Origin: Oopsacas minuta
Taxonomy: Eukaryota > Animalia > Porifera
Direction: 5' to 3'
Length of the DNA stretch: 58,311 nucleotides
Assembly (NCBI GenBank): GCA_024704765.1
Contig: JAKMXF010000040.1
Coordinates: 1 to 58,311, forward strand
Part shown: positions 14,511 through 57,552 of the stretch, in pieces
How the letters are laid out: each line of letters begins with the position of its first letter
Numbering within the stretch: position 1 is the first letter of the stretch
Position numbers and translations under genes: made by a program
Notes under the pieces: generated by a model
What the model saw: only the letters and a program-made list of their open reading frames with translations
The model's database searches: none
Told to the model about the DNA's origin: nothing

Positions 14511-14548
14511 TCAAAATCACAACACATAAACATAGATAGATTTGTATA

Positions 14549-15421: not shown

Positions 15422-17058
15422 TATTGCTAAATATTTATAGGAGTATGAATTAATACAAATAGTCAGTAGACATACATGTAGCTCATGGTCATATACGAAA
15501 AATTACTAGTGATAATAGTCGATGAAAATGGTATAACAGTTAAATGTAAAGTACGTATACTTCACAGATTCTTGTAATTGGTTGAATGTTACTCATTTGG
15601 GTTTGTTATAATGCACAGTGGACTTGTTACATGGAGTGCTAGCAGGGTGACCAGATGTCATCCTTTGGGAAGGTCAGTGCGTTGTAGCCTCGCTAATCCG
15701 AACAGCATAGTCCCAATTGCAAAATATATCGTTCTGGCTAGCGAAATTGAATAAAACTATACTATAGTCTCTAGGAGTACATTGCTTTGGAAGTAGTCAA
15801 TTGAAAGGCCTTCGAAGTATGTAATATTGCACAATTAGGGTTGTTGATGGTTCTTCAACTTCTAAGACCGGTTATCGTCTCTCTTCTAACTCAATACTTT
15901 GGTAATACCAGGGTATTATGATTCTAGTGATTGCAAGGTTTTAATTCAAAATATGACATCATAGGAAAATTCACTTATCGAAAATTCAATATTTGAATTT
16001 CTCTAATTTCGTATTTAATTCGAATAAATATTCACCAAATATGTTTATAAATCAATACGTCATCACGTCTTCATATGTTACTCCGATTATTTCATGAATG
16101 GATTTTTAGAAATATATTTTTAATGTACAAATTATAAATTGTGAAATCTTTGCTGTAATAAGCTATCTTTGAACTTAGATTATCTTAATTGTAAAGCAAA
16201 TGAACAAATCAATTATCCTAAAATCAACTAGGATATTACGTGTCTTTGTTACACAAAAAATGCAAACACTAAAGTGGTATAAATGAACTAATCATCGCAT
16301 AATTGCGCCTAAACTTGATGAAGATGACTGTTTGAACTTTTACATTAGTCTAAGTTGATTCCTTAGATGTCCTTACCCTGAAAAGGTTCAATTCAAAACA
16401 TTGAAGGAAAAATCTTTCTTTAATGAAACATATAAAATTTAACTCTTATCTTATTCTATGCATAATTTGGCAGCATTGTTCTGATTCAGTACCCGAATAT
16501 GATATATTTTGGATAGCCTGTGTCAAATTTAAGATTCCGGGAAATATTCACAGGTATTTGAGAACTGGGTTCACCACTAATCAGGGGTTCATGTCTGCAA
16601 TAGAATTGGATACAATTAAGTATTTTGGAAAAAGAATTTATGGAATTGGGGCAAAACAGTTGTGTATTCTAGCTTAAGAACAAACTAAGCTATAATTTGA
16701 TGCGATGAAATACCGACAAGAACAAGCGTTACTGCTATTCAAAGGTTCCCGCAGAGTAAAGATGGAGGTCCCAAATGCTTGAATATATTCATGGTTATAA
16801 TATAAATTATAAACATGAATAAATTATTGTTTGTTTGTTTATCTGTCTGTTCATTGTCAAAAGAAAGGAGTATTGATTTGCTACTATTAGATTGAATTAG
16901 CATTTCCAGATGTTACTTAGCAAAAACTCAGCACAGTGCCAAAACTGGGGTTCACAGAATCGTAAAACTAGATTTGCTGACTTGTAGTCTATTGGAGGGA
17001 TTAGTTTATGACATAACCGTCTCTCCGGGGGTGCTACATAATGAAAGTAACTACTCAC

Positions 17059-23800: not shown

Positions 23801-25139
23801 TTCCCTGATCATGTTGGAGGATTTTAGGTACACCGAATGAGAGATAAATTACCTGTAAACAATCCAATATTTCTTTAGAAGTTTTAGTCTTGAGTGGTCG
23901 GGCAATTACAAATTTACTCAGGTAGCACACGATGACAAGAATGTGCTGAAATCCAAGTACAGTGCGAGACTTATTGCGTACAAGATCAATTCCACAATGA
24001 CACCATGGTTCTTCAGGAGGAGGAATAGGTTGAAGCTCTCGTTGTGGCTGAGGAGGTAGAGCAGCAGAGGTTTGACAGTCATGGCAAGTTCGGATCTAGA
24101 ACGGGAAATGAGTTAGTTGTCAGTTTGTAGTCCAGTCTAATGTAATTTGCCACGTCCCAGATGTCCCACTAAATTAGCATTCCGTCCCGCTTTTTCTTCA
24201 CTCAGGTTGGCAAATATATGTGAAATACTCCCACTACCTATCCCAATTACTAACTACCGCAAGGATCATTAGTTGTTAGTTACATGGTTGGTTGGTTGGT
24301 TGTACCGTACAAATAGATTTCCATATGATATAATTGTATACCCCGGTATACTAAATATCATCAGATCGCACAATATTAATTTTACAATCGCACAAATAAA
24401 GCTGTATACAGTAGAATAATTACAAGGTGAATAACCTCAAACTATAAAATACATTCTGTTCTCAGTCTTAACAACACCTTTTGCAAATTTCCCTAGATTT
24501 TCAAAATTTGTAATCCAGGGATCCCTGGAGGGTTGGTAAGTCTGTGTTCTCAGCCACATTTTCTTGGAAAATCACATATGAAAGAAATAAGTAATTTAGT
24601 AACTCACGTAGGATCCAACATCATTGTATATGCCATTCCAATCATATTTGTTTCGGATTCCATCAATGGTAGTGTTGAGTCCAGGATGAGTGACATTGTG
24701 ATAGAATCCGATAATGTTGTCAATTTCTGAGACTAGTGGAATCTCCAAGTATTTCACACAGCCATTTTTCTTTCTGAAAATCTACAAGAAAATTATTTTA
24801 GTTAAACTCAGAGGTTGTAGGTAGCATTGAGGGGCAGAGGAGCCCCCTAGCGTTTTCGCCCTTCTCATCTCCCTATGGTACGCAAATTTAATGAGACAAC
24901 TACATATCTGCCTCCTCGCAGATATGTAGTTACCTCAAGATTTCTAATTATGTCCCGAAATATGCATAAATCAAACATATCATTCAGGAATATACCTTCA
25001 TTAGCTTATTCTCTTGAAAGTAAATCCCCTAACACTTTCTGACAAAATTCTTCTTTCTGTAGCGATCACTCTTGATTTCTGGTGGGATAATATTCGTCTG
25101 GAGGTATCCACGAATTGCTTCATACTCTGTCGCATCCAT
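20836..25139 (-). mobile_element. Ginger-like intron-containing Gypsy-type integrase/transposase gene with a C-terminal USP-like protease (element A, decayed)
   Basis: Exons 25139-24996 (MDATEYEAIRGYL..), 24781-24608 (..YHNVTHPGLNTT..YDW..), 24095-23784 (IRTCHDCQ..GIDLV..HDQGTEF), 23408-23302 (TAYHPQSNGLVESYN), 23202-22796, ~22520-22240 (YLGPYTI) and ~22160-20836 (SNTCSIDS ... RHFYS..FYKYD). Contains a stop, frameshifts and one GT>AT donor. Confidence 0.85.
24898..24931. repeat. Perfect 14-bp hairpin in intron 1 of element A
   Basis: aactacatatctgc-ctcctc-gcagatatgtagtt. Confidence 0.85.
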
Positions 25140-25172
25140 AATGAAAAATGTCAAAAGTAAATATATTACATA

Positions 25173-26024
25173 TCAAAATATCTGTAGACAATTCACAGTA
25201 TGATAACACACTACTATAACTCTATCATGATTGTCTACTGTTACTGCTGTTGGTTGCTCAGAGACTGGAATATTATGAATTGATTGGAATTCAGGATTGA
25301 AGATAGAAATAGAATTAGAAGAATAATCAGCATATAGAATGTTGTTAGAATTGTCAATAAAGAAAGATTGGGGATCAATAACTTGATTTCCTTGTCCTCG
25401 TGAAATGATTCTCTTCTGGAGTATGTGGTTATGATTGAATAGATGGATACAAGGATTAGATGTATCTAGCACATAAATGTATTCTTTAGATAGTTTAACA
25501 TCACAAGGGTATTTGAATGAACCAAATTGTGATTCGAATTGGAAATCTTGTGAGAGTATTTGAATTCGATTGTTATTAGAATCACAAATGTAAATATCAT
25601 CATTAGATTCATTGATTGCTATACCCCAAGGAATGTCGAATTCCAACTCTCCTTTTCCATGTTTACCAATTCTAGAAATAAATTCACCATCAAGATTATA
25701 ATTCAGTATGTCGTGGTCATGAGTAATTAGAATCCTACTCCTACAAATAACTAAGCTTCTTGGACTGAACATCTTTCCTTCACCATTACTGTCACCAAAT
25801 TTGAATATATACTTAGCCGTACTGTCAAATACCTTAACACAATTATTAGAATAATCTACTATATATATATTTCCAGTCAATTTGTCAACTGCAACACAAA
25901 GTGGACTGTAAAGTTTATCATTTCCTTCACCTCTCTTACTAGAACACACCAGAGGTTGTATCTTGCTTGTGTAATCATTTCCAGTTTTCACTCTCTCCGT
26001 TTCAATAGTAATAGCTGTGGCCAT
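25173..26024 (-). CDS. NHL-repeat beta-propeller protein, subfamily B (NHL-2), 283 aa from ATG 26024, intact
   Basis: Homology to all paralogs starts at MATAITIETERV. The upstream in-frame extension in the ORF track is not conserved. Confidence 0.9.
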   Translation of the reverse strand: MATAITIETERVKTGNDYTSKIQPLVCSSKRGEGNDKLYSPLCVAVDKLTGNIYIVDYSNNCVKVFDSTAKYIFKFGDSNGEGKMFSPRSLVICRSRILITHDHDILNYNLDGEFISRIGKHGKGELEFDIPWGIAINESNDDIYICDSNNNRIQILSQDFQFESQFGSFKYPCDVKLSKEYIYVLDTSNPCIHLFNHNHILQKRIISRGQGNQVIDPQSFFIDNSNNILYADYSSNSISIFNPEFQSIHNIPVSEQPTAVTVDNHDRVIVVCYHTVNCLQIF

Positions 26025-26414
26025 TGTTGCTAAATGGATATAAGGGGTAGAATAGCTAAAATTAGCGCAGATTGGAGAATACAATAGTAACAGGAGATCT
26101 GTATACATGTGTGCGTATAGAAGGTTAGATTTCAGATTTGGTATACAGGTGGCATAATGTCTCAAAAATGGTTGGTTTCCCAATTCAGATAGAGCAGACA
26201 TATTAACTAGGTAGGACTCAGGACATGTTTGTCATATGAGGCATTTTGCCGATAGTAATCATCTGGTACAGTGCAACCCGGAAAATCCACCAAACAGATT
26301 ATTGCGGGTCAATTCTGTCCGTCTACCAATTCATATGCATAATAATACTAATGGCGTGTTCCGCCACCTACCATAGGTTATGTGAACCAATTACGTCATT
26401 AATTACACTCATTA

Positions 26415-30576: not shown

Positions 30577-32593
30577 TCATTTTGTGATATCATGATGCGT
30601 AGTATTATCTGTTAGAATAAATACATACAGTAAATTGGATAAAGTGTATATGATAATTCGTTGAATTGTCTACAGCTTACCTCTCTTATTCCTTATACAG
30701 CATATGTATGACATAATGAAGAATAGTACTATGAATAGTATCAGTAGTACACCTCCAATAGCTCCTATTACTCCTACGATTATAGCTACAGACAGACAGA
30801 TATACAGATAATAGTGATAGAATCAGACAGATAGATATACAGATAATAGTGATAGAATCAGACAGATAGATATACAGATAATAGTGATAGAATCAGACAG
30901 ACAGATATACAGATAATAGTGGTAGAATCAGACAGATAGATATACAGATAACTTACGGAGTAAGGTAGCAGTAGGAGCTATTAGATAGAAATATATAAAT
31001 GGATAAACGGGTACACAGAATTACTGGCTAAGGCAGGGGTGAACAAACTAGCAGGGTGAAAATAGTTCTCTTGGCCTGTGCTAATGAATGCAAATAGACT
31101 CACTCATTGCTGTAGTTCCAGTATCATTAACAGATGTAGCAGTAGCAGTAGGAGGGGTAGGAGGGGTAGTGGTCATAGGTGGATTACCTAAAGAATACAA
31201 ATAGTACCATGGATATTGAAGAATAGATTAATGACGATAATATCAAAACAGAGATTATTCCAAATATTACCAGAGTTATAGACAGAACACCTCTGTATAC
31301 CAGTCAATTGTTGTCCATACTGTTGTGCAATGTTAAGACAAGCAATTATGATAGTTAATACTCCTGTGTTATCAGAGGAAGTATGTGGAGTTATGTTTAT
31401 AGAGTAAACAGTGATAGAAGAGAGTTGTAGGAATGTAGAAGAGTTAGAAAACTGGTCAGTAGTACCAGATAGAGTGTGAATATAATACAGCTCTAATGAG
31501 TACTCTATGAGGATATCCTGATCCACTAGTGATGGTAGGAGAGACTATATAATAGGATTAAACAATTAGAGAGAGTAAACAAACAAACAAACAAACAACT
31601 CACCCATTCTAAAGTAAGCATTCCATTTGATTGATTATAAGTGAGGAATATATCTGGGTTGTTATCAGCCAATGAATAACCTACATAGAATCAATAAACA
31701 AATAAACAGATAAACAAATAATAATTCTAACACTTACTTATAACAGCAATAGGATCAGCTGTTTGATTAGTAGAGTTACCAACACAACTCATAGCTATTA
31801 TAGAATATGAATAATCTGTATTTAACTGTAAGAAGTTAAGAAGGAATATTGAGTGATAGAAAAATTGAAATTATTTATATCAGCTCCATCCTCAAACAGG
31901 AAGTACTCAATCTCTCTGTCACTAGCTCCAGCTGTCCAGGATAGATCTACTGTACTCTCACAGATGTTAGAATTAATTCCTGATAGAGTAGATAGGAGGG
32001 AAGAGGGAGGAAAGGGAGCAGCTAGAGGATAGGAAATCCATAAAGGAGCTAGAGGATCAGGAAATCTAACTCTAAGTAAAGAATTACTCACCAGCTTGTC
32101 CCATAGGCATACCAGACACTAAAGCACCAGAGATAGCCAAATTAGTGAATGTTCCATGACATCCAAAGGTAGTATCACTATCAAGGGGCAGATAACTAGA
32201 TATTATCAGTCTAATACCAGGTGTAGCAGAGGTAATAACTAGTCCATCTGTGTTAGCTGAGTATCTGGTGAGATTTACTGCTTCTATTACTTCATTGGTG
32301 TTGATTTGACTCAAATTAACAGCAGTAGATCCATTGAATGATACTAGAGCTACTGCTAATGCAAATGATTCAAAAGGAGGAGCTTCTACGTAGCAGATCA
32401 TCTCCAGCTGTTCTCCGACACAAAGAAGTTCATTGGGGGAAAATGTTATGCTCACTAGAGGAAAAGAGAGTAGAGGTTAACAGATAACATATGCATAGCC
32501 CATGGTGTAAGTAAGGACTAGGTTATAATAAACCTTGAGCTGTATTTCTTATAACGTTAAAGATAAACAACAACAGAGAAAAGAACACAACAT
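30577..32593 (-). CDS. Eight-exon type-I membrane protein: signal peptide, Ig-like, FN3, FN3-like, Thr/Pro stalk, TM and short tail. Two single-base frameshifts (pseudogene or assembly error).
   Basis: Phase-compatible GT-AG exons 32593-32534, 32454-32092, 32021-31738, 31680-31604, 31544-31301, 31187-31104, 30977-30957 and 30785-30681, plus terminal exon 30608-30577 (nine segments counting the 21-nt micro-exon). FN3 motifs VDLSW and LQLNTDYSYSIIA. TM PIIVGVIGAIGGVLLILFIVLFFIMSYICC-IRNKR. Confidence 0.75.
30791..30951. repeat. 35-bp minisatellite, about 4.6 copies, filling an intron
   Basis: Unit gacaga(c/t)agatatacagataatagtg(a/g)tagaatca starts at 30791, 30826, 30861, 30896 and 30931. Confidence 0.95.
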
Positions 32594-35392: not shown

Positions 35393-36938
35393 CCCACAGG
35401 GCTGATTTTTAGGATACAGGGGTATTTTTGGCCTTCTCGGACAAATTATGACGTCATTGTCCATTTTGGATTTTCCAAAAATCACATTCACCACTTCTCA
35501 GCCAAAATACATGATAGAAGTTTAAAATTTGAATCACAGGTACTTCTTAATGTGCCAAATGTTGTAACTTCATGATTCTGACCAAAAGCTAACTAGTCAT
35601 AGTATTATTACGTCACCATGACTGTACAAAATACCATAATTTCCCTAATTCCAAATTTCAGAATTTCCTATCACAGGGGGAAGAAGTCCCGAGATTACTA
35701 ACCCAAAGCGGCGTAGCATCTCCAGTATCAGCAGAGAAGGCCATTGAATATAATTTAGATGGGCCAAGGATAATATAATCCCAAATATTTAAGTATTCTT
35801 TGAATTAGAGGCACCTAGTGGAGAGGATATTTTGTCGCGTTGCTACCAATAATACCATAAAATCTAGCTGTAAAATAATTAGCTAACCTGTAACAGTAAG
35901 CCTTCGCACAGCGTGGTAGCAAGCAAAGCGCGCTATTGAAACTACATGATGACATAATTGGCTTAATCCATAATCAACTAATAACGAGTTTCTATAATTC
36001 TGAGGTTTTTCTCAAAGTCTTTACTGAATTTCTTACGTGTATGACAATTTCTCAAGTAATGGCCTTTCTCTGAAGTGCTTGATATATTATAACCTATCCT
36101 CAGTAAATCCATCAATCTATGAATGGATTGTGTTCTCAGAAAATCTATATAGACTACCATTTATGTAATACTTCCTCTAATCACATAATCGCAAGGGAAA
36201 TTCTTCCAATTTATACATCCTTATTGGTCTCTGGGTTAGCCGTTCTCACATATAGAGATATGACTACATCAATATTTCATAACCATAAAGTATCTCCATT
36301 GGCCATTAACTCTTAGTCAATAATTACAAACAAAGGTCCGAACCAGCCTTGAAGGAAATACTAACGAAAGTTGCATCCGTATTTCTACAATAGTCACTCT
36401 CACTCAGGTATAATGAAGCACATAATTGAGGTTAGCATTTATGGATGGTTTATAAACTCCCACAGAACACAATACACAATTCTGTAGTCAATAATCATCT
36501 CTGTTCAAGAAATTATGGAAATTTGGTCAAAACACTTTACAACACTATGTAAGCAACAAAGAAACAACAATTCTTAATTAGAGAATGCACATATATTAAA
36601 CAATATTAATTACAGATTGTGAAATAAATACAGGAAAATTAACGGCAATTACAGGCCACAATAAAAAAAATCTGGGAAATACTTCGATACACCCGATGAA
36701 CACAATATTGGGAAGTCACGCCAGCACATGAAAATATACAAAATTAGTATAATTGAATAAGTAAATGAATAAACAAATACTAATGGAGGAATAAACAGTA
36801 CATAAGCAACAAGACAGGAAATAATAAATCTAATCAAGAATAACAATAATGTAAGGCTATATGTGAAGGCGTTATGTTAAGAAAGGGAAAGAAAATATAA
36901 TGAAATATAGAAATAAACCACATAGATAGAATTGTATA

Positions 36939-37810
36939 TCAAAATATCTGTAGACAGTTCACGTTATGATTACACACTACTATAACTCTATCATGATTGT
37001 CTACTGTTACTGCAAATGGATGCTCAGAGATTGGAATATGGTCAATTGATTGGAATTCAGGATTGAAGATAGAAATAGATTTAGAAAAATAATCAGCAAT
37101 TAGAATGTTGTTAGAATTGTCAATAAAGAATGATTTGGGATTAATGACTTGATTTCCTTGTCCTAATGAAATTACACTCTTCAGGAGTATGTGGTTATGA
37201 TTGAATAGATGGATACAAGGATTAGATTTATCTGACACATAAATGTATTCATTAGAGAGTTTAACATCATGAGGGTATTTGAATGAACCAAATTGTGATT
37301 TGAATTGGAAATCTTGTGAGAGTATTTGAACACGATTGTTGATAGAATCACAAATGTAAATATCATTATTAGATTCATTGATTGCTATACCCCAAGGATA
37401 GTTGAATTCTAATTTTCCTTTTCCCTGTTTACCAATTCTAGAAATATATTCACCATCAAGAGAATATTTCAATATACCGTGGCCCTGAGTAATTAGAATC
37501 CTATTCTACAAATAGCCAAACTTCTTGGATAGTACATCTTTCCTTCACCTCTTCTGTCACCAAATTTGAACATATAATTAGCAGTACTGTCAAATACTTT
37601 AACACAGAGATTGTAACAATCTAATACATAAATATCTCCAGTTTTGTCATCTAATGCGACACAACTTAGCCATTTAAGTTCAGCATTTCCATTATCTTTC
37701 TTACAAACACTCACTAGAGGTTGTATCTTGCTTGTGTAGTCAATTCCAGTTCTCACTCTCTGTAAATTATTCTTAACAGGTTCTGGTTCAATAGGATTAG
37801 ATGTGGCCAT
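36939..37810 (-). pseudogene. NHL subfamily A gene (NHL-5), full length with one 1-nt deletion near 37505
   Basis: ORFs 37493-37810 and 36939-37472 join into a 290-aa paralog if one base is restored (TGT AGA A-T AGG versus TGT AGG AGT AGG). Confidence 0.85.
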
Positions 37811-38671
37811 TATTGCTAAATATTTATTAGAGCAAGAATTAATACAAATAGAAATTGTCAGTAGACATACCTATAGTGTAGCTCATGGTCATTTCGCACA
37901 TGATTAGTGAATCGTATTAGCTACATAATCTTATACAAACATTCCTGTCTCCAATCTTGAGCTATCTTTTATCCTTAGACTATGAGTATATCTACTTTGA
38001 TAATACAATTAATCTTAGGACATTTAAGATGGTTGATTGTATTTATTTGTAATTTTTCCGTGCCAAAGCTGTGAAATTATATTACATTTATATATATATA
38101 ATCCAACCACAAGTGATAATATACCCAAACTCAGACTTATGCCATGTAAATACATTACTTGTTTCCCAATTATTTATGATAGTCCAGGTTCGATCCGGTC
38201 AGGGGTGAATTCTTAAACCGTTCCATCACTAGCGGTACTGATCTATAAATTATTCTAACATATAATCCAATAATAAATATCTGTGTAAGTAATTGATTTT
38301 GGGTTGAGAGTAATTTGAGGGATATTTTTATCATCCAAAAAATCCATTCGATAATTACAAATAACTTACACATAACTCAGCTATATACTATAGTACAGAT
38401 TTGTGTAGCTTTGATATCTTCTAGGAAAGCTCATTTTTCGGGGTTGATGAAAGTCACATTTTAGAATGAGGGTATGTGGTTTAGTATTGCAAAAAACTGC
38501 ACTATACTATAGCTCAGCTATGTATAAGGAATCTCTTATTATACGTATTACTGTAACTGCGGGCTATAGCTTACTATATACACGGCTAGATAAGCAAAAT
38601 TTGCCAAAAAAATGTTCCTGGACATTGATTATATTCACTTTGATCGTGTAGAATTGCAGTTTTCATTACAA

Positions 38672-41040: not shown

Positions 41041-41366
41041 ATACGTATTTGAATTAGCATAAATTATTATACGTACACTCGAACCTCTTATCTGGACTCC
41101 GATATCCGGGCACCTCCCTCAACCGGGCACCATTTTTCCAAAAGGATTGAAATTGATTCGGCCATTTTCTAATTTCAGTAAATATTCCTTATAGTAGAGC
41201 TGTTTTACTCGTACTTCATATCTAACACGTTTCTTTGTAACTAAAAACCATCATAACAGCTATATCCGTCCATATCGATAGAAATAGTAATGGAAGATGA
41301 AAGGAATAAATAAACAAAGAAAGAATTTAAATGACAAACAGAAATACAAATACATAGAGTTACATA

Positions 41367-42239
41367 TCAAAATATCAGTAGACTGTTCACAGTATGATTA
41401 CATACTACTATAACTCTACCATGATTGTCTACTGTTACTGCTGTTGGATCCTCAGAGACTGGAATATTATGAATTGATTGGAGTTCAGGATTGAGGATAA
41501 AAATAGAATTAGAATCATGATCAGCAATTAGAATGTTGCTAGAATTGTCAACAAAGAATGATTTGAGATTAATGACTTGATTCACTTGTTCAAGTGAAAT
41601 TACACTCTTCAGGAGTATGTGGTTATGATTGAATAGATGGATACAAGGATTAGATAAATCTAACACATAAATGTATTCTTTAGATAGTTTAACATCATGA
41701 GGGAATGTGAATGAACCAAATTGTGATTTGAATTGGAAATCTTGTGAGAGTATTTGAACTCGATTGTTAATAGAATCACAAATGTAAATATCATCATTAG
41801 ATTCATTGATTGCTATACCATAAGGATAGTTGAATTCTAACTCTCCATTTCCCTGTTTACCAATTCTAGAAATATATTTACCATCAAGGGTATAATTCAG
41901 TATACCGTGGTTATGAGTAATTAGAATCCTAAATCTACAAGTCATTAAGCGGTTTGGACTTGACATCTTTCCTTCACCATTACTGTCACCAAATTTGAAT
42001 ATATACCTAGCAGTGCTGTCAAATACTTTAATACAGTTATTCAAACAATCTAATATATAAATATCTCCAGTTTTGTCATCTAATGCGACACAACTTAGCC
42101 ATATAGGTTCAACATTTCCATTATCTTTCTTACAAACACTCACTAGAGGTTGTATCTTGCTTGTGTAGTCAATTCCAGTTCTCACTCTCTGTAAATTATT
42201 CTTAACAGGTTCTGGTTCAATAGGATTAGATGTGGCCAT
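41367..42239 (-). CDS. NHL-repeat beta-propeller protein, subfamily A (NHL-6), 290 aa, intact
   Basis: Intact ORF, paralogous to NHL-1. Confidence 0.9.
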   Translation of the reverse strand: MATSNPIEPEPVKNNLQRVRTGIDYTSKIQPLVSVCKKDNGNVEPIWLSCVALDDKTGDIYILDCLNNCIKVFDSTARYIFKFGDSNGEGKMSSPNRLMTCRFRILITHNHGILNYTLDGKYISRIGKQGNGELEFNYPYGIAINESNDDIYICDSINNRVQILSQDFQFKSQFGSFTFPHDVKLSKEYIYVLDLSNPCIHLFNHNHILLKSVISLEQVNQVINLKSFFVDNSSNILIADHDSNSIFILNPELQSIHNIPVSEDPTAVTVDNHGRVIVVCNHTVNSLLIF

Positions 42240-44083
42240 TATTGCTAAATATTTATTAGAGCAAGAATTAATACAAATAGAAATTGTCAGTAGACATACC
42301 TATAGTGTAGCTCATGGTCATTTCGCACATGATTAGTGAATCGTATTAGCTACATAATCTTATACAAACATTCCTGTCTCCAATCTTGAGCTATCTTTTA
42401 TCCTTAGACTATGAGTATATCTACTTTGATAATACAATTAATCTTAGGACATTTAAGATGGTGGATTGTACTTAGACATATACCACCATTAATCTAGGTA
42501 TTGGCAAACTTTCGGGATCGTCTTATTTTCCGGTGCTATAACTGTGAAAGTATAACACCTTTCTTTAATGAAACCACAAGTGATAATATACCAAACTCAG
42601 ACTTATGCCATGTAAATATATTACTTGTTTCCTAATTAATTATGATAATCCAGGTTCAATCCGGTCAGGGATGAATTCTTAAACCGTTCCATCACTAGCG
42701 GTACTGATCTACAAATATATTCTAACATATAATCCAATAATGAAAATCTGTGTACGTAATTGATTTTGGGTTGGAGTAATTTGAGGGATATTTTATCCTC
42801 CAAAAATGCATTTTATAATAACAAATAACTTGTATATAGCTCAGCTATACTATAGTACAGATTTAGGTATTAGCTTTGATATCTTCGAGGAAAAGTCATT
42901 ATTCGGGGTTAATGAAAGTCACATTTTAGAATGAGGGTATGCGGTTAGTATTGCAAAAAACTGCACTATAATATAGCTCTTCTATATATAAGGAATCTCT
43001 TATAATACGTATTACTGTAACTTCGGGCTATAGCTTACTATAAACACACTGCTAGCTAAGCAAAGAATTGCCAAAATAATTTCCTAGCAATTGATAATGG
43101 TAAACGGAACTTTCGTCTCAGGAAATTTGGTATCCTTTAGCTGTTTTAGTAATCTTTCTTTTGTTTTTAGAAAAGAAAAGAAGATGGATAATGTTGCAAA
43201 AGATCGATAGAATAGGTAGAAGGTTACAAAAAGGTGGTAGAAAGGGCGGAATGTATAAGATAGGACGAGACCATCACGGATATTTCTTAGATTAGCTAGC
43301 AAAAGGTTATACGAAGGGTTGATCGGGGATTTTAATGCTAGACTAGATTCTGATGAATGTTTTGTTCTGATTAGCTACATAATGGTCTGGGGTGGGAGAT
43401 ATGTGTTTTATATAAAGGAGAAGATGATGGCTATGTTTCGAACTGTCATTAATGTTGCTAAAGTCGATTGTAAGGTGTGGGATATTTGGGAAAATGGGAT
43501 CAGGAATTTTTTTTCGAATTTTTAGCGGAATAAGTAGTCTCTTTGTTTTATAGAAAAAGAAAAACAAGATAGGTAATGTTGCAAAGATCGATATAATTGG
43601 TAAAAGCGTACGAAAATTCCAGAGACTATGTCATTGTGGTTAAAATAACCTGAAAAGCAGGTACAAAATTTTTGTAGATATCTCCGCCATATGTAGAAGC
43701 CTATATTTAAAAGAATTTTTAATGATAACTACAATTCTTCATTATCAAAGAGAATATAATAAATGGTGGCCAGGATAGTATTTTGGCGATTCTTTGCTTA
43801 GCTAGCCGTGTATATAGTAGGCCATGGGCGGACCTTCTCCTATAGTTACCCCATCCTGCCCTACACCTAGGCAACCATGGGGTGCACGTGCCACTTGTGC
43901 TCTATGCAAGGCACGTGCATGGGTTCACTGCTGGATCCTGGAAACAAAACTGATCTTACCCTGATAGGAGTCAGTGTTAAGCTAGGAGGGTGGAAATATT
44001 TCAAAAATGGTTCGAGAGTTGCATTAGTTTATTGTATGGCAGCCTCTTCAAGGGTCTAACACGTAATGAAAGAAACTACTCAC

Positions 44084-44243
44084 CTTTATCTAGAATTAAG
44101 ACAATAAATATTGAGAAAAATCTTTAGTAGAATAAAATATAATAATAGTAACAGAAATATATAAAATCAGAATATCATCAAGTTATATAATTACTGATAT
44201 ACATATAGTAATGTGATACTTACTGTATTCTCTTGTACAGATT
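44084..44243 (-). repeat. Exon-like dispersed repeat, copy 5
   Basis: CAG|AATCTG ... ATAAAG|GTGAGT. Confidence 0.8.
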
Positions 44244-44751
44244 CTGAGATTTATGAGTTTTCAATTTATGTCTCAGATTATTGCAAAACAGCAGCCAAAC
44301 GGAACTAAATGCACGAATAGAACCACAATACCCTGCTCAGGCAAAATTAGAAAGTGACATACCATATAGAAGCAAAAAGTCAAGAACAAGAAGCTGGTTA
44401 CGCAGGCCTTGTGATAATTACCATTAATTCAATTAAATAGGATTGAAATTAATCAGAAATTCTACACATACCAAATATGAATTAACGTTTGGGGCCTGCT
44501 TCAATGTTGCGTCTATTGCTACACCATTGCCATGTCACCAATGACTCACATGACACATACCATGACAAACCGAAAAGAAAACGTGGAGTAATGTGACGTA
44601 ACAGCCCTATTATTTTGTATACCTATGGCGTATACCCATAATTGAGAAATTCGAATTCAATACAACATTCAATAAATCTTTCCTTGACTAAGTACAACAA
44701 ACACACAACTATTGACTTTACTAATATAGATTAGTTAATGAAACTACTCAC

Positions 44752-44911
44752 CTTTAGCTAGAATTTAGACAATAAATATTTAGAAATATCTTTAGTAGAA
44801 TAAAATAGAATAAAAGTAATAGAAATTATATAAAATCAGAATAACATCAAGTTATATAATTACTGATATACATATAGTAATGTGATACTGCTGTATTCTC
44901 TTGTACATATT
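44752..44911 (-). repeat. Exon-like dispersed repeat, copy 6
   Basis: CAG|AATATG ... CTAAAG|GTGAGT. Confidence 0.8.
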
Positions 44912-45212
44912 CTGAGATGATAAGTCATAGCATTCTATACATTAAGGCAATGGCACTCTATTCAAATTCTAGACCATGGATGGCAATTACCCTGGACTTT
45001 CAAAATTTCAAATATTTGCTATAATGCCTTTCAACGCTATTCTAAAGTGCTCTAATGTAACATTTGTTATATTTTGATGATTTACAACCTCTCAACCCAA
45101 TTATAATTACCATATTATAATACTTTAATAGTCCTTGACAAGATTGACAACCATTAGACTTCCTAATGTAAGAAAAGACTGCAAATCCTGCAATATATTG
45201 ACGTGTAAGGTG

Positions 45213-45620
45213 TTATTTTTCCATTTTCCAAGCTAATAGACCAGCTGATGTTGTTTCATGGTAAATTTTTAATGCGAAACTAACATTTTGTCGTTCTAAC
45301 CTAGATGGCCAAAAAGATTTCACTGTTAATTTTGGTGCTCGCTTCAAGACATTGCGTTTATCAGATTTAAACAAATTACGGATATCTTCAAACGGTGTAT
45401 AACAAATTTGGGGATAATTTGATTTAGAGATAAATTGAATGTTCGAAATACTGGCTCGAGAAATTGAGACGTAAAAAGATTTATTTGTTTCACTTACATT
45501 TCGTTTTGGATTTCCACTTATCTGGCAATCACCGAATTTCGGGAAATGAATGTATTATCCAATTTTCAAGATTTAACCAATTATTCCTGATGGATTTAAT
45601 GATGTGAACAATATTAAAAC
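45213..45620 (-). mobile_element. P-element/THAP9-like transposase fragment
   Basis: VHIIKSIRNNWLN and FEDIRNLFKSD..APKLTVKSFWPSRLERQNVSFALKIYHETTSAGL on the minus strand. Confidence 0.75.
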
Positions 45621-46068
45621 ACAGAATCAAATTTCTTTCTGGATTGCATGGGTGTTATACTTTTGGTTGCAGTGTTGAATCAGCGGAAAAACATTTGAAT
45701 AATCGAACATTGAGTGGATAGTTGTCTGTACACACAGCTTAGATAAACAGACAACAATCTTAATTATCACAGATAGTGGATTTAACAATAGGATATAAAG
45801 TTTTACAGAAGAAGAGCCTAAAGGTATTAACCGAACAATAGAAGAGAACCTGGTTGATAAACTAGAAACCATCATAGAAAATACAGTAGTGTGTGGATCA
45901 TCAGGATTGTCAATCTATCCGATTACCCTTCCCCTCCCTTATAAGACGCATCACTACGAATGTGGAGTTCATCCATTTGAAGTATGACATCACGCTCTAA
46001 ATCATTAAAGCCGAAGCAACCTCACATAGAATTTTAGTATACCCGCTCTCCAATCCAATATGCATTAG

Positions 46069-48756
46069 ATAGAACATGGAGAACCGTTGTACGTTCATGC
46101 GATGAGGGAGAAAGGGTTTTAGAATCTTGCCATTCCAGTGACTTTGGTGAGTATATTAGTAATTCATTTACAACAATGTAATAGAACTATAATTTCTTCC
46201 ATAGAAGTAATTTCTTTTACAGTTTAAAATTATCTAGGTGGACATTTTGGGCGAGACAAAACGTACGAAAAAGTTGCAGCCCGTTTTTACTGGCCTAATA
46301 TGTACAATGATGTACGTAAATATGTTGCAGCTTGCGACATTTGTCAGAGAGTGAATGAATCTGGAAATTTTATAAAGGCTAAAGCTCCCTTACATCCGAT
46401 AAAAGTTGATCCAGAGGTATGGAAAATGGTACGTTCTTCTGTCGATTTTCATTCGCACCGTTCTAATTTTACATCGATGTCTTTTTAACTTTTATAGGTG
46501 GGAGTTGATTTGATTGGACCACTTACAATGACACCAAGAGGTAATAAATACATTATTACCATGGTTGATTACTTCTCAAAGTGGCCAGAAGCAGATGCAT
46601 TACCAGATAAGAGTGCTAAAGGTGTTGCTCTCTTTCTTTATAAGACTATGTGCCGGTTTGGATGCACTCAGGTAGTTATCAGCGATCAGGGTAGAGAATT
46701 CGTTAACAAAGTGAATCAAGAGCTATTTGATCTAACTAAAACAACTCATAGAATTTCTACCGCCTACCACCCTCAAACAAATGGTTTAGTTGAGCGATTT
46801 AACCAGACCATTCAACGCGCTCTCCTAAAGCTTGTAATAAAAGAACAAGATAATTGGGATATGTACATTGATGGAGTTCTATTTGCATATAGAACATCTG
46901 TACAAAAGACAACAAAAAAATCGCCTTTCGAAATAATGTACCTTCGGTGAGATATTTGTAACTGTTCTATGCTAGAATTTTTAACTCGATTACATTCTAC
47001 AGTGAAGCTATCCTGCCGATTGAGATGGATTTTATGCCTGAATATCTAAATATCCCTGCGGACCCTAACATAGATGCATTTATTTGCCAGATGAATAACA
47101 TAAAGAAGTCGCTTTATGGAAAGGTTGATAAGAATATCCAGGAGGGACAGGAAAAACAGAAGAATGAGTATGATAAAAAACAAAAGCAATCTAAAGTAAG
47201 TCTTCTTAAGAATTATTTAGTATTTACATACCAGTTTATATGTTTTGCTCTAGAATTTTAAACCAGGTACACTAGTTCTCCTTCGAAATAGTGCTAAGGA
47301 TGGAAGAAAGGGTGATAAATTTCGAATGCGGTATCTTGGACCATATGAAATTTTTCAAGATATTGGGAAGGGAGTTTACAAGCTTCGCAATTGTGTAACC
47401 GGAATTCTCCTCAAAAAAACTCAGAATATCTCCCGTCTAAAGTTGTACTGCAAGAAGAAATTTCAAATCAGATCGAATCATGTATCAGGCTACAGATATT
47501 CAAAACAAAGAGCGATGCAAACTGGAATTGTAGAGTCTGAAAACGAACTGTGTGAGAAGGAACCGAAAGAAGAACTTGTCATTTCTGTTGACAGAAAAGA
47601 CAACGTAAGTAATCATTCTATATAAATTTAGGACAATCAACGCAAACAATTCAACCTCAATAATCATGGTTGATACAAAATGGTTTGTGTAGCTTCTCTT
47701 TAGTTTAAAATTTTCATTCTGAACTCTAAATCGAGAAATTATCCGTTAGAATATACACAATTTCATAAAATCACCTGATAGTCCCCCTTACACGAATAAA
47801 TTCTACCTTCTTTAATAGGAGTCAATAAACGGTACAATATCTTCAAGTCCTCCATCACCATCTCCATTCTGGGTGCACAATCTGTATCTCAGCCCAACTG
47901 ATGAGCTAGAAATACTAAATGGACTTTGGCTGACAGATAAACACATTGTTGCGGCTCAAAAATTGTTGAAAAACCAGCACCCACTTACAAATGGGCTTGA
48001 AGATCCCCTCATGCTTGCAGAAAAGCTTTCATATAAATCAACTTCAATCTCATTTGTCCAGATTGTCAACTTAGGTAGGACACACTGGGTCTGTGTCTCA
48101 AGCTTTAATTGTCTACCTGGAATTGTGGATGTTTATGATAGCATTCCAGCATGTTCTCTGGGTTCGTTATCTTTGAGAAAACAAGTGGCCTCAATAATTA
48201 AAGCAACTGAACGCAGTTTTGAACTACATTTTGTTGAAACTCAAAGACAATCAGGGGGAACAGATTGTGGACTATTTTCTATAGCCTTTGCTACAGCACT
48301 ATGCCAAGGCATTGACCCTCATACGTGCTCCTTTGATCAAACTCAGATGAGGATACATCTGCACAGCTGTCTAGAACAATTGAACATGACTCTGTTCCCT
48401 TCTTCAAAAAAGCCACGTCGAAAGTGCACGAAGAGATGGCAGAGAAAGATCGTAGTAGCAAACTGAGTAGAAATATTTGAATTTGAAATAGGTTTCACTA
48501 GTACAATACAAAGGTATTTAGAAAGTAGATAATATCTTTGGATAAATCCGCACTAGTGCCAGAGGTCCGCTGGGGGACATCTGACCCAAAGTGGGGACTA
48601 CTTACCCTAGTGTCAGAGGTCCGGGGGGACACTCCACACTAGTGCCATTCGTCGGCGGGACTCCTTGCCCTAGTGTCACTAGTCCGGGGGACATTTGGCC
48701 CTAGTGCCACTAGTCCGGGGGGACAGAATTTAGGGAGGACACATGACACTACCACA
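46069..48756 (+). mobile_element. Ginger1-like DNA transposon (element B): spliced integrase + GPY/F + Ulp1/C48-like protease, with right terminus
   Basis: Exons 46069-46146, 46238-46428, 46498-46946, 47003-47195, 47254-47604 and 47819-48466 splice in frame with no stop. H2C2 (CH..GHFG..CDIC), DDE (GVDL, SDQG, VERF), protease (THWVC, VYDS, QSGGTDCGLF). GC-rich ~31-bp subterminal repeats at 48550-48725. Ends ..CCACA|CCGG. Confidence 0.88.
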
Positions 48757-49092
48757 CCGGAACTCTGTGCCCGTAAGGGTTCAGTAGTTCCTGGATCAAG
48801 AGTCTCAGGCTCTGCCATCGCTAATTACTCTAGCTACCAGGTAATGTGAATTGAAAACCGATAATTATGATTAAAGTAAACAAAAACAAATACAAAATGA
48901 ATAAAAACTAAAATAGATAAACCATAAATTGATGAAAATATCCCACAATCATTTTGTATTTGTTTTTGTTTACTTTAATCATAATTATCGGTTTTCAATT
49001 CACATTACCTGGTAGCTAGAGTAATTAGCGATGGCAGAGCCTGAGACTCTTGATCCAGGAACTACTGAACCCTTACGGGCACAGAGTTCCGG
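48757..49092. repeat. Perfect 144-bp inverted repeat with a 48-bp spacer, bounded by CCGG at both outer ends
   Basis: 48757-48900 is the exact reverse complement of 48949-49092. Confidence 0.95.
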
Positions 49093-49278
49093 ACCCACAG
49101 AGCGACAGGAACTCAGTTCTGACGTGTTATCCGATACATAAGAAGGACAATAATAGAGCTAGAGGAAGTGGATGCAGGGGAACAAGTGGGTACAGCCTTA
49201 GAACAATATTTGGCAAGTAAAGAAGCCAATGAAGCTGTCAGGAAATATATTAGAGATGCACAAGAGAAAAATTTACAA
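49031..49278 (+). pseudogene. First coding exon of an unidentified host gene (one 1-nt deletion near 49138; no downstream exon found)
   Basis: ATG 49031 MAEPETLDPGTTEPLRAQSSGPTERQELSSDVLSDT joins IRRTIIELEEVDAGEQVGTALEQYLASKEANEAVRKYIRDAQEKNLQ|GTATGC if one base is restored. Confidence 0.5.
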
Positions 49279-49951
49279 GTATGCCCTTCTTTTGATTATT
49301 CCTTTACCGCACATATCTGTCCATTAGTCGTTTTAATCTTGGTTGGGCTTTTCTCTCATTCAATGATTAGTGTCGATCATATCTCAATATCCACAACGAC
49401 ACACAAATTCTGTATTCCCTTAGCAAGATTTTGTATCACAAATTTTGTAATATCATTGTGTTTTTCTATACAATAAAAATACATTTTCAATGTCTTGCAT
49501 TAGTGGAATACGGGCGATCAAGAAGTATAATATGTATACTGTATTCTGTCTACGCTAACAACATCGTAAAACGAAGTAGAAAGTCTGTATTTAAGAAGTC
49601 CGTGACATTCATGAGGTAAAATTCTCGGAATATTGCCATATGGAATAACAATGATCAGAAATTGACAGCTGGGATCAATTTCAGGATTGATCTGACAGGA
49701 TCCGGATATATTATCGAAGGGAGTTATTTCGGCGAACACACTCTGAAGGAAAAAATCTCATAAGTCCTAATAAACATACCTACACTATCTGAATGAGGCA
49801 ACTAACCATTTTGAGACATTATGCCACCTGTATACAATTCTGAAATCAAACATTCTATACACCCACATGTGTATACATCTCCTGCTACTATAGTATTATA
49901 CAATCTTAGCTCATTTCAGGTATACTAACTCTTTATATCTATTTAGCAAAA

Positions 49952-50803
49952 ATGGCCGCAGCTATTACTATTGAAACGGAGAGAGTGGAAACTGGAATTG
50001 ATTACACAAGCAAGATAGAACCTCTGGTATGTTCTAGTAAGAGAGGTGAAGGAAATGATGAACTTTCCCGTCCACTTTATGTTGCAGTTGACAAGATGAC
50101 TGGAAATATATATATAGTAGATTATTCCAATAATTGCGTTAAGGTATTTGACAGTACTGCTAAGTATATATTCAAATTTGGTGACAGTAATGGTGAAGGA
50201 AAGATGTCCGATCCAATAAGCTTAGTTATTTGTAGGAGTAGGATTCTAATTACTCATGACTACAGTATACTGAATTATAACCTTGATGGTAAATATATTT
50301 CTAGAATTGGTGAATATGGAAGTGGAGAATTAGAATTCAACTTTCCTTGGGGTATAGCAATCAATGAATCTAATGATGATATTTACATTTGTGATTATCA
50401 TAACCATCGAATTCAAATACTCTCACAAGATTTCCAATTCAAAACACAATTTGGTTCATTCACATTCCCTCTCGATGTCAAGCTCTCTAAAGAATGCATT
50501 TATGTGTTAGATGGATCTAATCCTTGCATCCATCTATTCAATCATAACCACATACTCCAGAAGAGTGTAGTTTCATTAGGACAAGGATATCAAGTTATTG
50601 ATCCCTTCTCTTTCTTTATTGACAATTTTAACAACATTCTAATTGCTGATTATTCTTCTAATTCTATTTCTATCTTCAATTCTGAATTCCAATCAATTCA
50701 TAATATTCCAGTCTCTAAGCAACCAACAGCAGTAACTGTAGACAATCATGATAGAGTTATAGTAGTGTGTTATCATACTGTGAATTGGCTACAGATATTT
50801 TGA
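49952..50803 (+). CDS. NHL-repeat beta-propeller protein, subfamily B (NHL-7), 283 aa, intact
   Basis: Intact ORF, closest to NHL-2. Confidence 0.9.
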   Translation: MAAAITIETERVETGIDYTSKIEPLVCSSKRGEGNDELSRPLYVAVDKMTGNIYIVDYSNNCVKVFDSTAKYIFKFGDSNGEGKMSDPISLVICRSRILITHDYSILNYNLDGKYISRIGEYGSGELEFNFPWGIAINESNDDIYICDYHNHRIQILSQDFQFKTQFGSFTFPLDVKLSKECIYVLDGSNPCIHLFNHNHILQKSVVSLGQGYQVIDPFSFFIDNFNNILIADYSSNSISIFNSEFQSIHNIPVSKQPTAVTVDNHDRVIVVCYHTVNWLQIF

Positions 50804-52157
50804 TATGTAACTCTATCTATGTATTTGTATTTCTCTATATCTTTTTGTCATTTGAATTATTTCTTTGCTTATTTATTCATTACTTCTTCCATTACTATTC
50901 TTTATTATTGTAATTCTTCAGTTATACCTTCCTTGATTCGTTATTTCATTTTCATCTGTTTTTGGTGGGTCTTTCTTCTAAGTTTTAGAATTTTGTGTAT
51001 TAGACCGCTGTTACCTAAATTTTATATATTTCAGGTTCACCTGAGGATTTGGCGTATGGAATTTCATATCAGAGCCTTTTGCTTGTCGCTTCGCGATGAA
51101 CTCTGCTCATTTCGCCTCGAGGTATCCATTATTCTCCAAATTGACGCTCCTTTGAGTATTATTATATAGATATATTCACAACAATGTATTTCACAAATAT
51201 TCGTATATGTCATCTGTATTATTGAAATATTTTGTAAGATCACCCCTTTCTAGTCGTTGCAGGCAAGTATCCACGTATATTTTGAGATGTATAATTTGTT
51301 TACTTTTTATCATTATTCCAATAGTATGATAATCGGGTTTAGCATTTTCGATGTTTATAAGGAATTCTATTTACTTCCTTGATTATACGATAAATAGTTA
51401 GTTATGGAACAATTTCTAGATTGCATTCCGTAAATGGAGATAGATTTAGTATCAGTTAGCGAGACTTGGTTAATACTGATTTCAAATTGAACAAACCTGG
51501 ATATGCGCAAAGACAATGTGTACAGATTTTCTGATATAAATCTTATCTACTCAAGACATAAAATCTAATATATTTCATAGTCTCTATCCAGTGCTTTGAT
51601 TGCTATCTACGTATCTATGTAGGGAGACACATTTCTGCGTATTTTTCGCTTGCATTTGGTTATTCGTCAGGAAATGCAGTAAATCTTGTTTTAGATTCCT
51701 TATTGGTTCAACAACAAGTTGGTAGTAATACTTACTCTACTTACAATTGATGTTGGAAAAGAGAACTTTTAGATAGTTTCAACCCGTTAACTACTTTAAT
51801 ATTTAACTTAAAATAATAATTACAACTGAACAATCGAATAAGTAGCAAAACGTCGGACTTCCCGTTCGTTTAGTTCCATTTTGCTGCTGTTCTGCAATAA
51901 TCTGGAAAATATATTGACAACTCATAACTCTCCGAAATGTACAAGAGCATGCAGTGGTATCACATTCGTATAGCAGGAATTATATAACTTGATGCGTGAG
52001 ATACGTAATATAATGCCTGACTATTGTGCATAGAATTACCTACCATGGATAACTTAAAGTACATTTTGTAATTCACCCATAATTGTAACATGCAAAATTG
52101 ACATTTTCTGAATTACTGAAATTCTGTCTTAATCACTTCTCCTATATAACTTAAGTA

Positions 52158-54725: not shown

Positions 54726-56317
54726 CACCCAACTAACTGCAATTTCATGTGTATTTTATTCTATTCTCACTGATTGAAGGTCTTTCCTATATTCCACTTG
54801 TATCCAGTTTAGATTACTACATTTAATCTATATCATCTAATAGCGCATGCACGTANCTTTTGTAGCTGCTTAATTGCAGGAGTTCATAGCTTGATAGTGT
54901 GGTAGTAAGTTTGTTACCACACAGGATGATTATTTAGGGCGCACAAACTTATTTGATGTTTCACTTACAATTTACGATTGTTTGGTAGCTTCATAACTTC
55001 TGCTGCCTACTTGAGAGGTACACAACTACTAAAGCCATCAACTCGTAGCACTACAAATCAAACCTATGCAAGGATTTTATTATCTGATAATTTGAGTTTT
55101 CATTTCTACTCGACATTTCGAACATTGAATATATTTAATCTATTTTGGAAAATATGGAAACTAAATGCTATGACATAATAGAAATTACATCTTATATTGT
55201 ATAATTCATTGAATAATTCATAATGAGTCAACTGAGATCAAACAATTGATATTCTAGTAATCTGTATGCGTTACTATAGTTAGAATAGATTGGAATGTTT
55301 CAATAAATTTGTGTGCTTAGTACAAATCTAATAGAGACTAGACTCAAACAAGATAGTTTTCAAACCTAAATATCTCAAATGATTTTGACTATTTTAACAT
55401 AATATTTTATACACATAAACATTCATACAGCAGGAATACATGCCCATGATTTCAAGAAAACTTAATATGTTTAAGTATACTAAATCCATAAGTGAACTAC
55501 TGCTGGTTAGATGCACCAATTTCTAATAGAAAAATATACATTCATTCCAGATACGTCTGTATCTCTTCTTTCGAATTGTCAAAGATATTTACATTCTGAC
55601 CATGGGAAGTTAGTCTAATTAATGAGTGAAGTACTGCTGGTCGAATATTCAGCCAACTTCACGCTCATTGAAAAGTAATATACTTGTTTCTCATCCCAGC
55701 CAGTCCCAAACTTTGTCCCCTGAGCTGAATGATTTTATTTGTATTTCTTCCAAATTTATACATAATTCTTTAGTCATAGAGTGTGCAATCCACATTTTAC
55801 TAGTTGTATAGTTGAAAACTTAGAATGTGATAAGATAATCAAAGGATGAAATATTTGATATATTAACTGACCTTTAAAAATATATTTAAAATACCGCCCG
55901 CTGTCCAAGTTTCTGAAGAAATTCCGGATGGGAAACAAGTAATATACTTACATGGCCTAAATCTGAGTTTGAGTATTATTCATTTGTAGTTTCATTATAT
56001 AAAGGTGTTGTACTTTCACAGCTGTAGCACGGGGAAATATGACGATCCTGAAAAAAATGCCAAAAAACTAGACCCTCGGCGGTATATCTCTAGGTACGGC
56101 TGACCACGAATTTACATGTCTTGAAATTATCTGTGTTGATAAAATAGATATGCTTATATTCTAAAGACAAGAGATAACTCAGGATTGGAAATAGGAAGAT
56201 TATGTGGCTAATACGATTCACTAATCATGTGGTAGATGACCATGAGCTATACTATAGGTATATCTACTGACAATGTCTATTTGTATGAATTCTTACTCCA
56301 ATAAATAATTAGCAATA

Positions 56318-57204
56318 ATGGCCACATCTAATCCTATTGAACCAGAACCTGTTGAAGATAATTTAGGGAGAGTGAGAACTGGAATTGATTACTCGAGCAA
56401 GATACAACCTCTAATGAGTGTTTGTAAGAAAGAAAATGGAAATGATGAACTCAAATGGCCGCAAGGTGTTACAGTAGATGACAAAACTGGAGATATTTAT
56501 ATGGCGGATTGTTTTAATGACTGTGTGAAAGTATTTGACAGCACTGCTAGGTATATGTTCAAATTTGGTGACAGTAGAGGTGAAGAAAATATGTACCATC
56601 CACGAAGCTTGGTTATTTATAAGAGTAGGATTCTAATTACTCATGACCACGGTATATTGAATTATAATCTTAATGGTGAATTTATTTCTAGAATTGGTAA
56701 ATATGGAAATGGAGAGTTAGAATTCAAATATCCTAAGGCGATAGCAATCAATGAATCTAATGATGATATTTACATTTGTGATTATTTTAACAAACGAGTT
56801 CAAATACTCTCACAAGATTTCCAATTCAAATCTCAATTTGGTTCACTCAAACGCCCTCTTGATGTTAAACTATCAAAAGAATACATTTATGTGTTAGATG
56901 AATCTAATCCTTGTATCCATCTATTCAATCATAACTACATACTCCTGAATAGTGTATAAGAGACAGCTATGTTTCACTAGGACAAGGAAATCAAGTCATT
57001 ACTCCTCGATCATTCTTTATTGACAATTCTAACAACTTTCTAATTGCTGATTATTCTTCTAACACTATTTCTATCTTCAATCCTGAATTCCAATCAATTC
57101 ACCATATTCCAATCTCTAAGCATCCAATATCAGTAACAGTAGACAATCATTATAGAGTTATAGTAGTGTGTGAGCATGCTGTGAACTGTCTACAGCTATT
57201 TTGA
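56318..57204 (+). CDS. NHL-repeat beta-propeller protein, subfamily A (NHL-9), interrupted by a 14-nt insertion that overlaps an adapter sequence
   Basis: Removing taagagacagctat (56957-56970) restores ..LNSV-VSLGQGNQVITPRSFFID.. through to TGA at 57202-57204. Confidence 0.8.
56952..56966 (+). other. Tn5 mosaic-end / Nextera adapter remnant (probable assembly artefact)
   Basis: GTGTATAAGAGACAG is the 3' 15 nt of AGATGTGTATAAGAGACAG. Confidence 0.8.
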
Positions 57205-57552
57205 TTTACAAATCTATCTATTTGGTTTATTTCTATATTTCATTTTATTGTATCCCCTTTCTTATCATAACATCTTCACGTATATCTTTACATTATAGTT
57301 ATTCTTGATTAGTTTACTATTTCCTGTTTTGTAGCTTATGTATTGTTTATTCTTTTACTTGTTCGCCAAGAATTCTCAAATATTTTCTATATCCTACTTT
57401 CGTAATATCGAAAGGATATTTAACGTATCCAATGTCAGGAAATTTCCACAATTTCGTATCGTATTGGAGATTTAACACAAGTTTTGTAACAGATAAGTTG
57501 GGCAGAACCGATATTTACCGATAATTATCTGATACAAAGCTTATCATAACAG

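Follow-up and report, generated by a model that had tools for sequence, protein, structure and literature searches.

In the alternative transposition of Ac/Ds and P elements (sister-chromatid or reversed-ends), a transposon end becomes joined to a rearranged flank that carries an inverted duplication. The two ends that take part come from different copies, and reciprocal deletions or duplications are left behind. Cut-and-paste copies that have lost their 5' part usually stem from abortive gap repair after excision. DNA repair and replication offer further relatives of the structure described here. Fold-back inversions with an asymmetric spacer have been documented in yeast (PMC7467729) and in humans (PMC3907307), and local fold-backs as well as inverted double insertions have been reported (PMC11724301). 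In the yeast double insertions, one locus contributes two overlapping fragments in inverted orientation, and 2-119 bp separate the junctions (Yu et al. 2024, PMC11724301). Finally, Ginger1 transposons are defined by TGTNR termini and an OTU or Ulp1 C-terminal domain, have terminal inverted repeats of ~40-270 bp, and produce target-site duplications that are CCGG in 75% of cases and CCGT/ACGG in 24% (PMC2836005).

The locus considered here lies in a 58,311-nt stretch of the glass sponge Oopsacas minuta (GenBank assembly GCA_024704765.1, contig JAKMXF010000040.1, positions 1 to 58,311), which we call the window; its contig is C40, and other contigs of the assembly are numbered likewise. In it, a young transposon of the Ginger1 type adjoins a piece of an essential gene (dynein) that is doubled back on itself (Table 1). 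The structure at 48757-49092 is a real-looking, one-off rearrangement of known kinds, that is, a DNA-repair scar and not a new mode of transposition. A link between the palindrome and Ginger activity is unproven.

Table 1. Coordinates of the features at and around the palindrome (window positions unless a contig is named).
Feature	Position	Strand	Description
Unclassified multi-copy repeat X	44926..46061		Left terminus intact, internal deletions, broken at 46061 (junction J1)
Ginger1-type DNA transposon copy	46063..48756	+	Positions 720-3411 of a 3411-bp element; 5' 719 bp missing
CCGG at Ginger terminus (junction J2)	48757..48760		Usual 4-bp target of the family; outer end of the left arm
Left arm, reversed fragment of the dynein gene	48757..48900	-	First 62 coding nt and 82 nt upstream of the ATG; homology C33:312231-312374
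Spacer	48901..48948	-	The following 48 nt upstream in the dynein locus; only the left arm is collinear with it
Right arm, forward fragment of the dynein gene	48949..49092	+	Ends in an intact, footprint-free CCGG (empty target site)
Remnant reading frame	49031..49141	+	36 codons of dynein exon 1, then TAA
Remainder of dynein exon 1 (to 49280) and 57 bp of intron 1	49093..49337	+	C33 homology ends at 49337
NHL-repeat paralogs	14500-15500, 25100-26100, 36900-37900, 41300-42400, 49950-50830, 56200-57260
Ginger derivatives, 284 bp	C335:54776-55059, C299:230757-231040, C55:50748-51031, C340:212831-213114, C322:109053-109336, C66:1104202-1104485
Ginger derivative, 253 bp	C44:635713-635965

A repeat search of the window returns a single perfect inverted repeat in this region, with 144 nt per arm, 100% complementarity and a 48-nt spacer, at exactly the coordinates given by the first-pass annotation of this DNA. 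A palindromic CCGG caps the outer edge of each arm (48757-48760 and 49089-49092). Read from the left, the first copy runs from its CCGG through the arm into 48 nt of upstream sequence and turns back at 48948/48949 (junction J3); the second arm, its CCGG, the remainder of an exon and part of an intron follow. In other words, the Ginger end is joined at CCGG to an inverted copy of a sequence that itself continues uninterrupted through the second CCGG, and here too the first description was accurate. The right-arm CCGG is unchanged and identical to that of the parent sequence on C33. In the alignment, no clear microhomology is present at the turn-back, with no complementary bases at 48948/48949 and 48900/48901, although microhomology at 48948/48949 could be masked by base changes in the spacer since the event.

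When folded as RNA, the palindrome region reaches -268.7 kcal/mol compared with -71 +/- 4.6 in shuffled sequences (z = -43), which is hairpin folding far beyond chance. The resemblance to the Rfam microRNA precursor MIR8562 (73.8 and 71.2 bits on the two strands against a gathering score of 211) is far below threshold and is that of a generic long AT-rich hairpin. On the minus strand at 48639-48818, a 59-codon chimeric frame leads from the left arm's ATG into the Ginger 3' end and is probably meaningless.

The origin of the duplicated DNA can be traced to another contig. In a search of the 61.46-Mb genome (365 contigs), the sole other match of the 336-bp core is C33:312231-312423. Window positions 48757-48949 correspond to C33:312231-312423 and positions 48951-49337 to C33:312374-311981. 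Left arm and spacer together form a single aligned block with the parent's upstream region (query 1-193 to C33:312231-312423), with 39 of the 46 aligned spacer bases matching the parent, and the alignment of the right arm stops at its inner end. Compared locally with 60 kb of C33, the window has only 443 bp in common with it (C33:311981-312423), which rules out that C40 is a haplotig of C33.

In the C33 gene, exon 1 precedes two open exons, one of 590 codons and one of more than 2574. Searched one by one and not as a joined gene model, the C33 exons carry DHC_N1, DHC_N2, AAA_6, AAA_7, AAA_8 and dynein lid domains, and they match structures of the human cytoplasmic dynein 1 heavy chain (DYNC1H1) with E = 1.6e-179 over residues 97-657. 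By these domain and structure matches the parent is a cytoplasmic dynein-1 heavy chain gene, and the window fragment spans ~130 bp of its upstream region together with exon 1 and 57 bp of intron 1. As a side observation, the sponge gene is very intron-poor in this stretch (C33:302001-312301), with its one open exon of more than 2574 codons.

This identification changes the reading of the locus in several respects. The first-pass annotation had taken the duplicated DNA for the start of a local host gene or gene family, and the sequence beyond the right arm for unique and coding-like. Judged by its homology, the former is instead a decayed dynein 5' fragment, homology to NHL-repeat paralogs starting at 49333, and the latter is homologous to C33. 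The reading frame that opens at the right-arm ATG (49031) does run through the second CCGG, as had been stated; it goes no further than a TAA at 49139-49141, after 36 codons. Nor is a hairpin RNA against the host gene family, as had been proposed, likely. The target would be dynein and not the NHL-repeat genes. Moreover, the two head-to-head, promoter-proximal copies would be expected to transcribe outward and the adjacent Ginger lacks its 5' region, both of which make such an RNA improbable.

The fragment has diverged from its parent throughout. Each arm differs from C33 by 4 substitutions and 2 indels in 144 nt, and the exon/intron part by 9 substitutions and 3 indels in 245 nt; over the whole window fragment this is ~3% substitutions, with five indels and a frameshift. 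A 1-nt deletion leads to the stop after 36 codons (the parent's exon 1 reads 85 codons to the splice donor), and two 3-nt deletions are also present. These differences mark the fragment as a decayed pseudogene piece of the dynein-1 heavy chain gene, which is not a retrocopy, since intron sequence is kept.

All six differences between arm and parent are common to both arms. The duplication of the arms, or else their homogenisation, must therefore postdate the divergence of the fragment. Polymerase errors are ruled out as the source of the differences, since both arms carry them all although the right copy extends past the start of the left copy and so could hardly have been copied from it. If the arms were as old as the Ginger copy, finding 0 differences in 144 bp would have a probability of 0.42-0.65; at the age of the fragment, the value falls to 0.0002-0.013. 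The age of the arm duplication is therefore compatible with that of the Ginger copy and not with that of the fragment, unless the arms have been homogenised.

On its left side the palindrome abuts the transposon. When 48480-48756 is used as a genome query, ~40 places are found, and every full match stops at the same last base. The terminus ...CACTACCACA at 48756 is shared by at least 13 other copies, nearly always with CCGG after it and with CAGG and CCAG once each, which makes 48756 the true end of the element and bears out the earlier observation that the left arm starts at the CCGG after the Ginger end. Such a joint appears too exact for a random break and would be the signature of integrase-catalysed joining. 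At the other end, the 5' terminus of the family is TGTCAGAGGGG, preceded by CCGG, ACGG or TCGG. The flanks of 25 Ginger ends are mostly CCGG, with ACGG in the copies on C310 and C109 and a single instance each of TCGG, CAGG and CCAG. Two copies (C310:915769-919179 and C109:25821) have unequal flanks, 5' ACGG and 3' CCGG, which is consistent with the minor class of targets in the published definition, or with a duplication that has decayed since the insertion.

Both termini fit TGTNR, the 5' end being TGTCA and the reverse complement of the 3' end TGTGG. Inverted repeats are limited to subterminal 31-bp arrays (82-84% over 69-90 bp), and the extreme termini share little beyond TGT. MITE-like derivatives of 284 bp, consisting of the ends only and mostly flanked by CCGG, occur at seven or more loci. 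In the window copy, the open reading frames at 46300-48466 contain an H2C2 zinc finger, an rve integrase core, an SH3/GPY-F region and a weak Ulp1/C48-like tail. The rve domain (PF00665) scores 42 bits against a cut-off of 32.6 and Integrase_H2C2 scores 24.6 against 25.5; SH3_Tf2-1 is weak, with GPYEI visible in the frame at 47326; and the tail resembles Peptidase_C48 (E = 0.0073) and a YopJ-type C55 peptidase (E = 3e-4), both short of the Pfam cut-offs. Target, termini and integrase features thus match a Ginger1-type element.

From element position 720 onwards, the window copy is 99.7% identical to the C310 copy (8 differences in 2694 bp) and is, by this measure, young. Positions 1-719 are absent throughout the window. 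In the C310 copy, these positions hold the 5' terminus, the start codon and ~63 codons, and a copy that lacks them cannot encode the full protein.

Further to the left, the broken inner end of Ginger meets repeat X. This repeat has more than 40 genomic matches that begin at window position 44925/44926, and none of its open reading frames gives a Pfam match. In four other copies, common sequence runs beyond the equivalent of 46061, so the window copy is broken there. It is also joined from three pieces, which lie 620-650 bp apart in other copies (e.g. C122) and overlap here by 1-8 nt. Junction J1 (46061/46063) therefore unites two broken elements, X and Ginger, with 0-1 nt of overlap. That X is nested in Ginger is ruled out, as X is broken at the junction and the 5' part of Ginger is absent from the window; that X is a relative of P elements, a guess from one motif, has no Pfam support.

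To the right, homology to dynein and homology to NHL-repeat paralogs overlap by ~5 nt at 49333-49337 (junction J4). Similarity to the closest NHL paralogs, those on C58 and C111, starts only at 49333, and the dynein fragment sits upstream of an NHL-repeat gene. The NHL-repeat genes of the window show no similarity to 44925-49477, which rules out the arms as a first exon of this family. On the contig itself, paralogous NHL-repeat genes (six-bladed propellers) with 84-92% similarity to one another are clustered, some in one orientation and some in the other. A repeat of ~190 bp is interspersed among them (e.g. 44069-44250 and 44737-44918), and a tandem 35-bp unit is present in four to five copies of 87-94% identity at 30782-30956.

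How did these pieces come together? The comparisons above establish the anatomy of the locus, what each of its pieces is, how old these are relative to one another, and that Ginger's terminus meets CCGG in the canonical way. For the order of events and the repair pathway, we infer a sequence of steps in which the fold-back came first and Ginger second, and we give this account roughly an even chance of being right. An old, decayed 5' fragment of dynein-1 would have been present upstream of the NHL-repeat gene. A broken or stalled DNA end would then have folded back, or switched template, during repair or replication and so produced the inverted duplication. Subsequently, a young Ginger1 would have integrated by ordinary chemistry into the CCGG of one arm, the other arm representing the empty site. 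Later still, the first 719 bp of Ginger and the DNA beyond them would have been lost, e.g. by abortive excision/gap repair with a flanking deletion, which would leave Ginger fused to a truncated, unrelated repeat X.

The fold-back type of origin, already suggested by the first-pass annotation, fits the anatomy. In particular, only the left arm runs on collinearly into the spacer, which is the asymmetry expected of fold-backs (PMC7467729, PMC3907307, PMC11724301). The joint of terminus and CCGG is the same as in at least 13 other copies, as ordinary integration would have it, and an empty site kept in the right arm means that the filled and the empty copy do not result from one simple insertion. 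Against the account stands the need for four separate events within 4.5 kb. There is also no visible microhomology at 48948/48949, and yeast fold-back junctions usually have some. Moreover, the assembly holds no remnant of the expected left flank (reversed exon-1 remainder, CCGG, Ginger 5' end). Simpler models fare worse. Simple inversion, staggered-cut inversion and a hairpin at an excision site each predict either a CCGG at the inner junction or a palindrome centre at the joint, and neither is seen.

The arms and the transposon could also have been produced together, a reading we consider rather unlikely. In such a coupled event, a double-strand break beside the still single-copy fragment would give a hairpin-capped or folded-back end, or a fork would stall at a Ginger strand-transfer intermediate and reverse, and the integrase would join a single Ginger end to a CCGG there. 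Joining at the CCGG 144 bp from the hairpin tip would open the hairpin and yield the inverted duplication, and end joining would attach the inner end of Ginger (position 720) to the far side of the break, within repeat X. This one step would account for a left arm that begins right at the terminus-CCGG joint opposite an intact right CCGG, for a spacer that belongs with the left arm, and for a one-ended Ginger fused to a broken repeat X with 0-1 nt of overlap. The identity of the arms (0/144 differences) is likewise compatible with the youth of the Ginger copy. However, no direct evidence links these steps, and a mirrored flank, scored as an inverted copy of the first 20 nt of flank within 1.5 kb, is found at only 1 of 25 distinct Ginger ends, namely at this locus. 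To our knowledge, one-ended integration in vivo is undescribed for Ginger, as is an inverted duplication as a by-product of one-ended integration for integrase-type DNA transposons.

The absence of the pattern from the 24 other ends also bears on alternative (sister-chromatid) transposition, which the first-pass annotation had put forward as one possible cause. This proposal is not upheld. A second transposon end at the same target was looked for, and no 5' part of Ginger is present in the window; the element is instead broken at position 720 and fused to a truncated repeat. The reciprocal junction (exon remainder, CCGG, Ginger 5' end) is absent at up to 3 mismatches from the assembly, which may be incomplete. 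The Ginger 5' fragment on C109 is ruled out as the missing partner, as it stops at an assembly gap (N) and has an unrelated flank.

The junctions are taken solely from the published hybrid assembly, and the turn-back junction, or the whole patchwork, might be a chimera of that assembly, with a polymorphic Ginger insertion as a possible contributor. We regard such an artefact as distinctly improbable. The genome was assembled from Illumina and Canu-corrected PacBio reads with SPAdes (k up to 99) and finished with SSPACE, pilon and GapFiller; the libraries came from different adults, coverage was ~186x, and no amplification step is mentioned (PMC10280926). The hybrid method and the use of different individuals make chimeras conceivable (PMC10280926). 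Furthermore, contigs break within Ginger copies (C188:1-133 and C46:1-95 start at Ginger ends) and C109:26104 holds an N after Ginger position 283, so scaffolds are unreliable at this family. A chimera would likewise give perfectly identical arms. On the other hand, the spacer is genuine sequence from upstream of dynein and not an adapter, and the arms measure only 144 bp with outer flanks that are different and meaningful, unlike the palindromes caused by missed adapters. A turn-back junction would also have to occur in k-mers and reads at ~186x to survive assembly and polishing, and genome amplification is not mentioned for these libraries (PMC10280926).

A very improbable reading is that the palindrome was born with the fragment. 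That is, a templated inverted double insertion would have filled an old break, gene conversion would have homogenised the arms, and Ginger would have arrived later. The overlap of 144 bp and the gap of 48 bp resemble yeast break-repair products (PMC11724301), and the ~5 nt by which the homologies overlap at 49333-49337, the outer junction, would suit such an insertion. Yet every one of the 4 substitutions and 2 indels would have to have been homogenised, and the inner junction lacks the microhomology whose median in yeast is 6 bp (PMC11724301). Last, the hairpin structure and the CCGG at both outer ends would suit a common MITE or fold-back transposon with duplicated CCGG on its flanks. This reading is refuted by copy count and has next to no probability left: the arm sequence occurs only here on C40 and in the dynein gene on C33, and the right arm is collinear into dynein exon 1.

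The locus offers a tidy case of the scars that break repair leaves in a natural genome, here that of a glass sponge, with four non-homologous junctions within 4.5 kb. It also corrects the record, in that the palindrome is neither the start of a host gene nor a silencer of the NHL family, and from its preserved empty target site the Ginger joint can be seen to be both canonical and recent. Should the coupled reading be true, a target-bounded inverted duplication would be a direct by-product of one-ended Ginger integration. If other Ginger ends in this genome were found to carry such target-bounded mirror duplications, they would point to a new aberrant-integration pathway for integrase-type transposons.

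Among the described systems, Ac/Ds and P alternative transposition differs from this locus in that only one transposon end is present here, no reciprocal product was found in the assembly, and the centre of the duplication lies 170 bp from the end of the element. The transposon itself is close to Ginger1 as described by Bao, Kapitonov and Jurka (2010, PMC2836005). It shares the 4-bp CCGG/ACGG targets, the TGTNR termini and a Gypsy-like integrase with zinc finger, DDE core and GPY/F region, and may also have a C-terminal cysteine-protease-like domain. It differs in that the window copy is the 3' 2694 bp only, and in that its family's two termini have hardly anything in common besides TGT and the inverted 31-bp subterminal repeats. 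The inverted double insertions of yeast (PMC11724301) are alike in their overlapping inverted fragments of a distant donor, the tens of bp between junctions and the short outer overlap. The present locus differs in its donor, a gene diverged by 3%, which would require the arms to have been homogenised later, in the larger size of its pieces, and in an inner junction without the reported 2-11 bp of microhomology. As for the fold-back inversions of yeast and humans (PMC7467729, PMC3907307), the palindrome here has arms of only 144 bp (389 bp counting the right copy to its end), is interstitial and not chromosome-terminal, shows no microhomology at the turn-back and has one arm that ends in a transposon joint. 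In common with them, it has opposite arms of one locus, a short asymmetric spacer collinear with one arm, and secondary rearrangements alongside.
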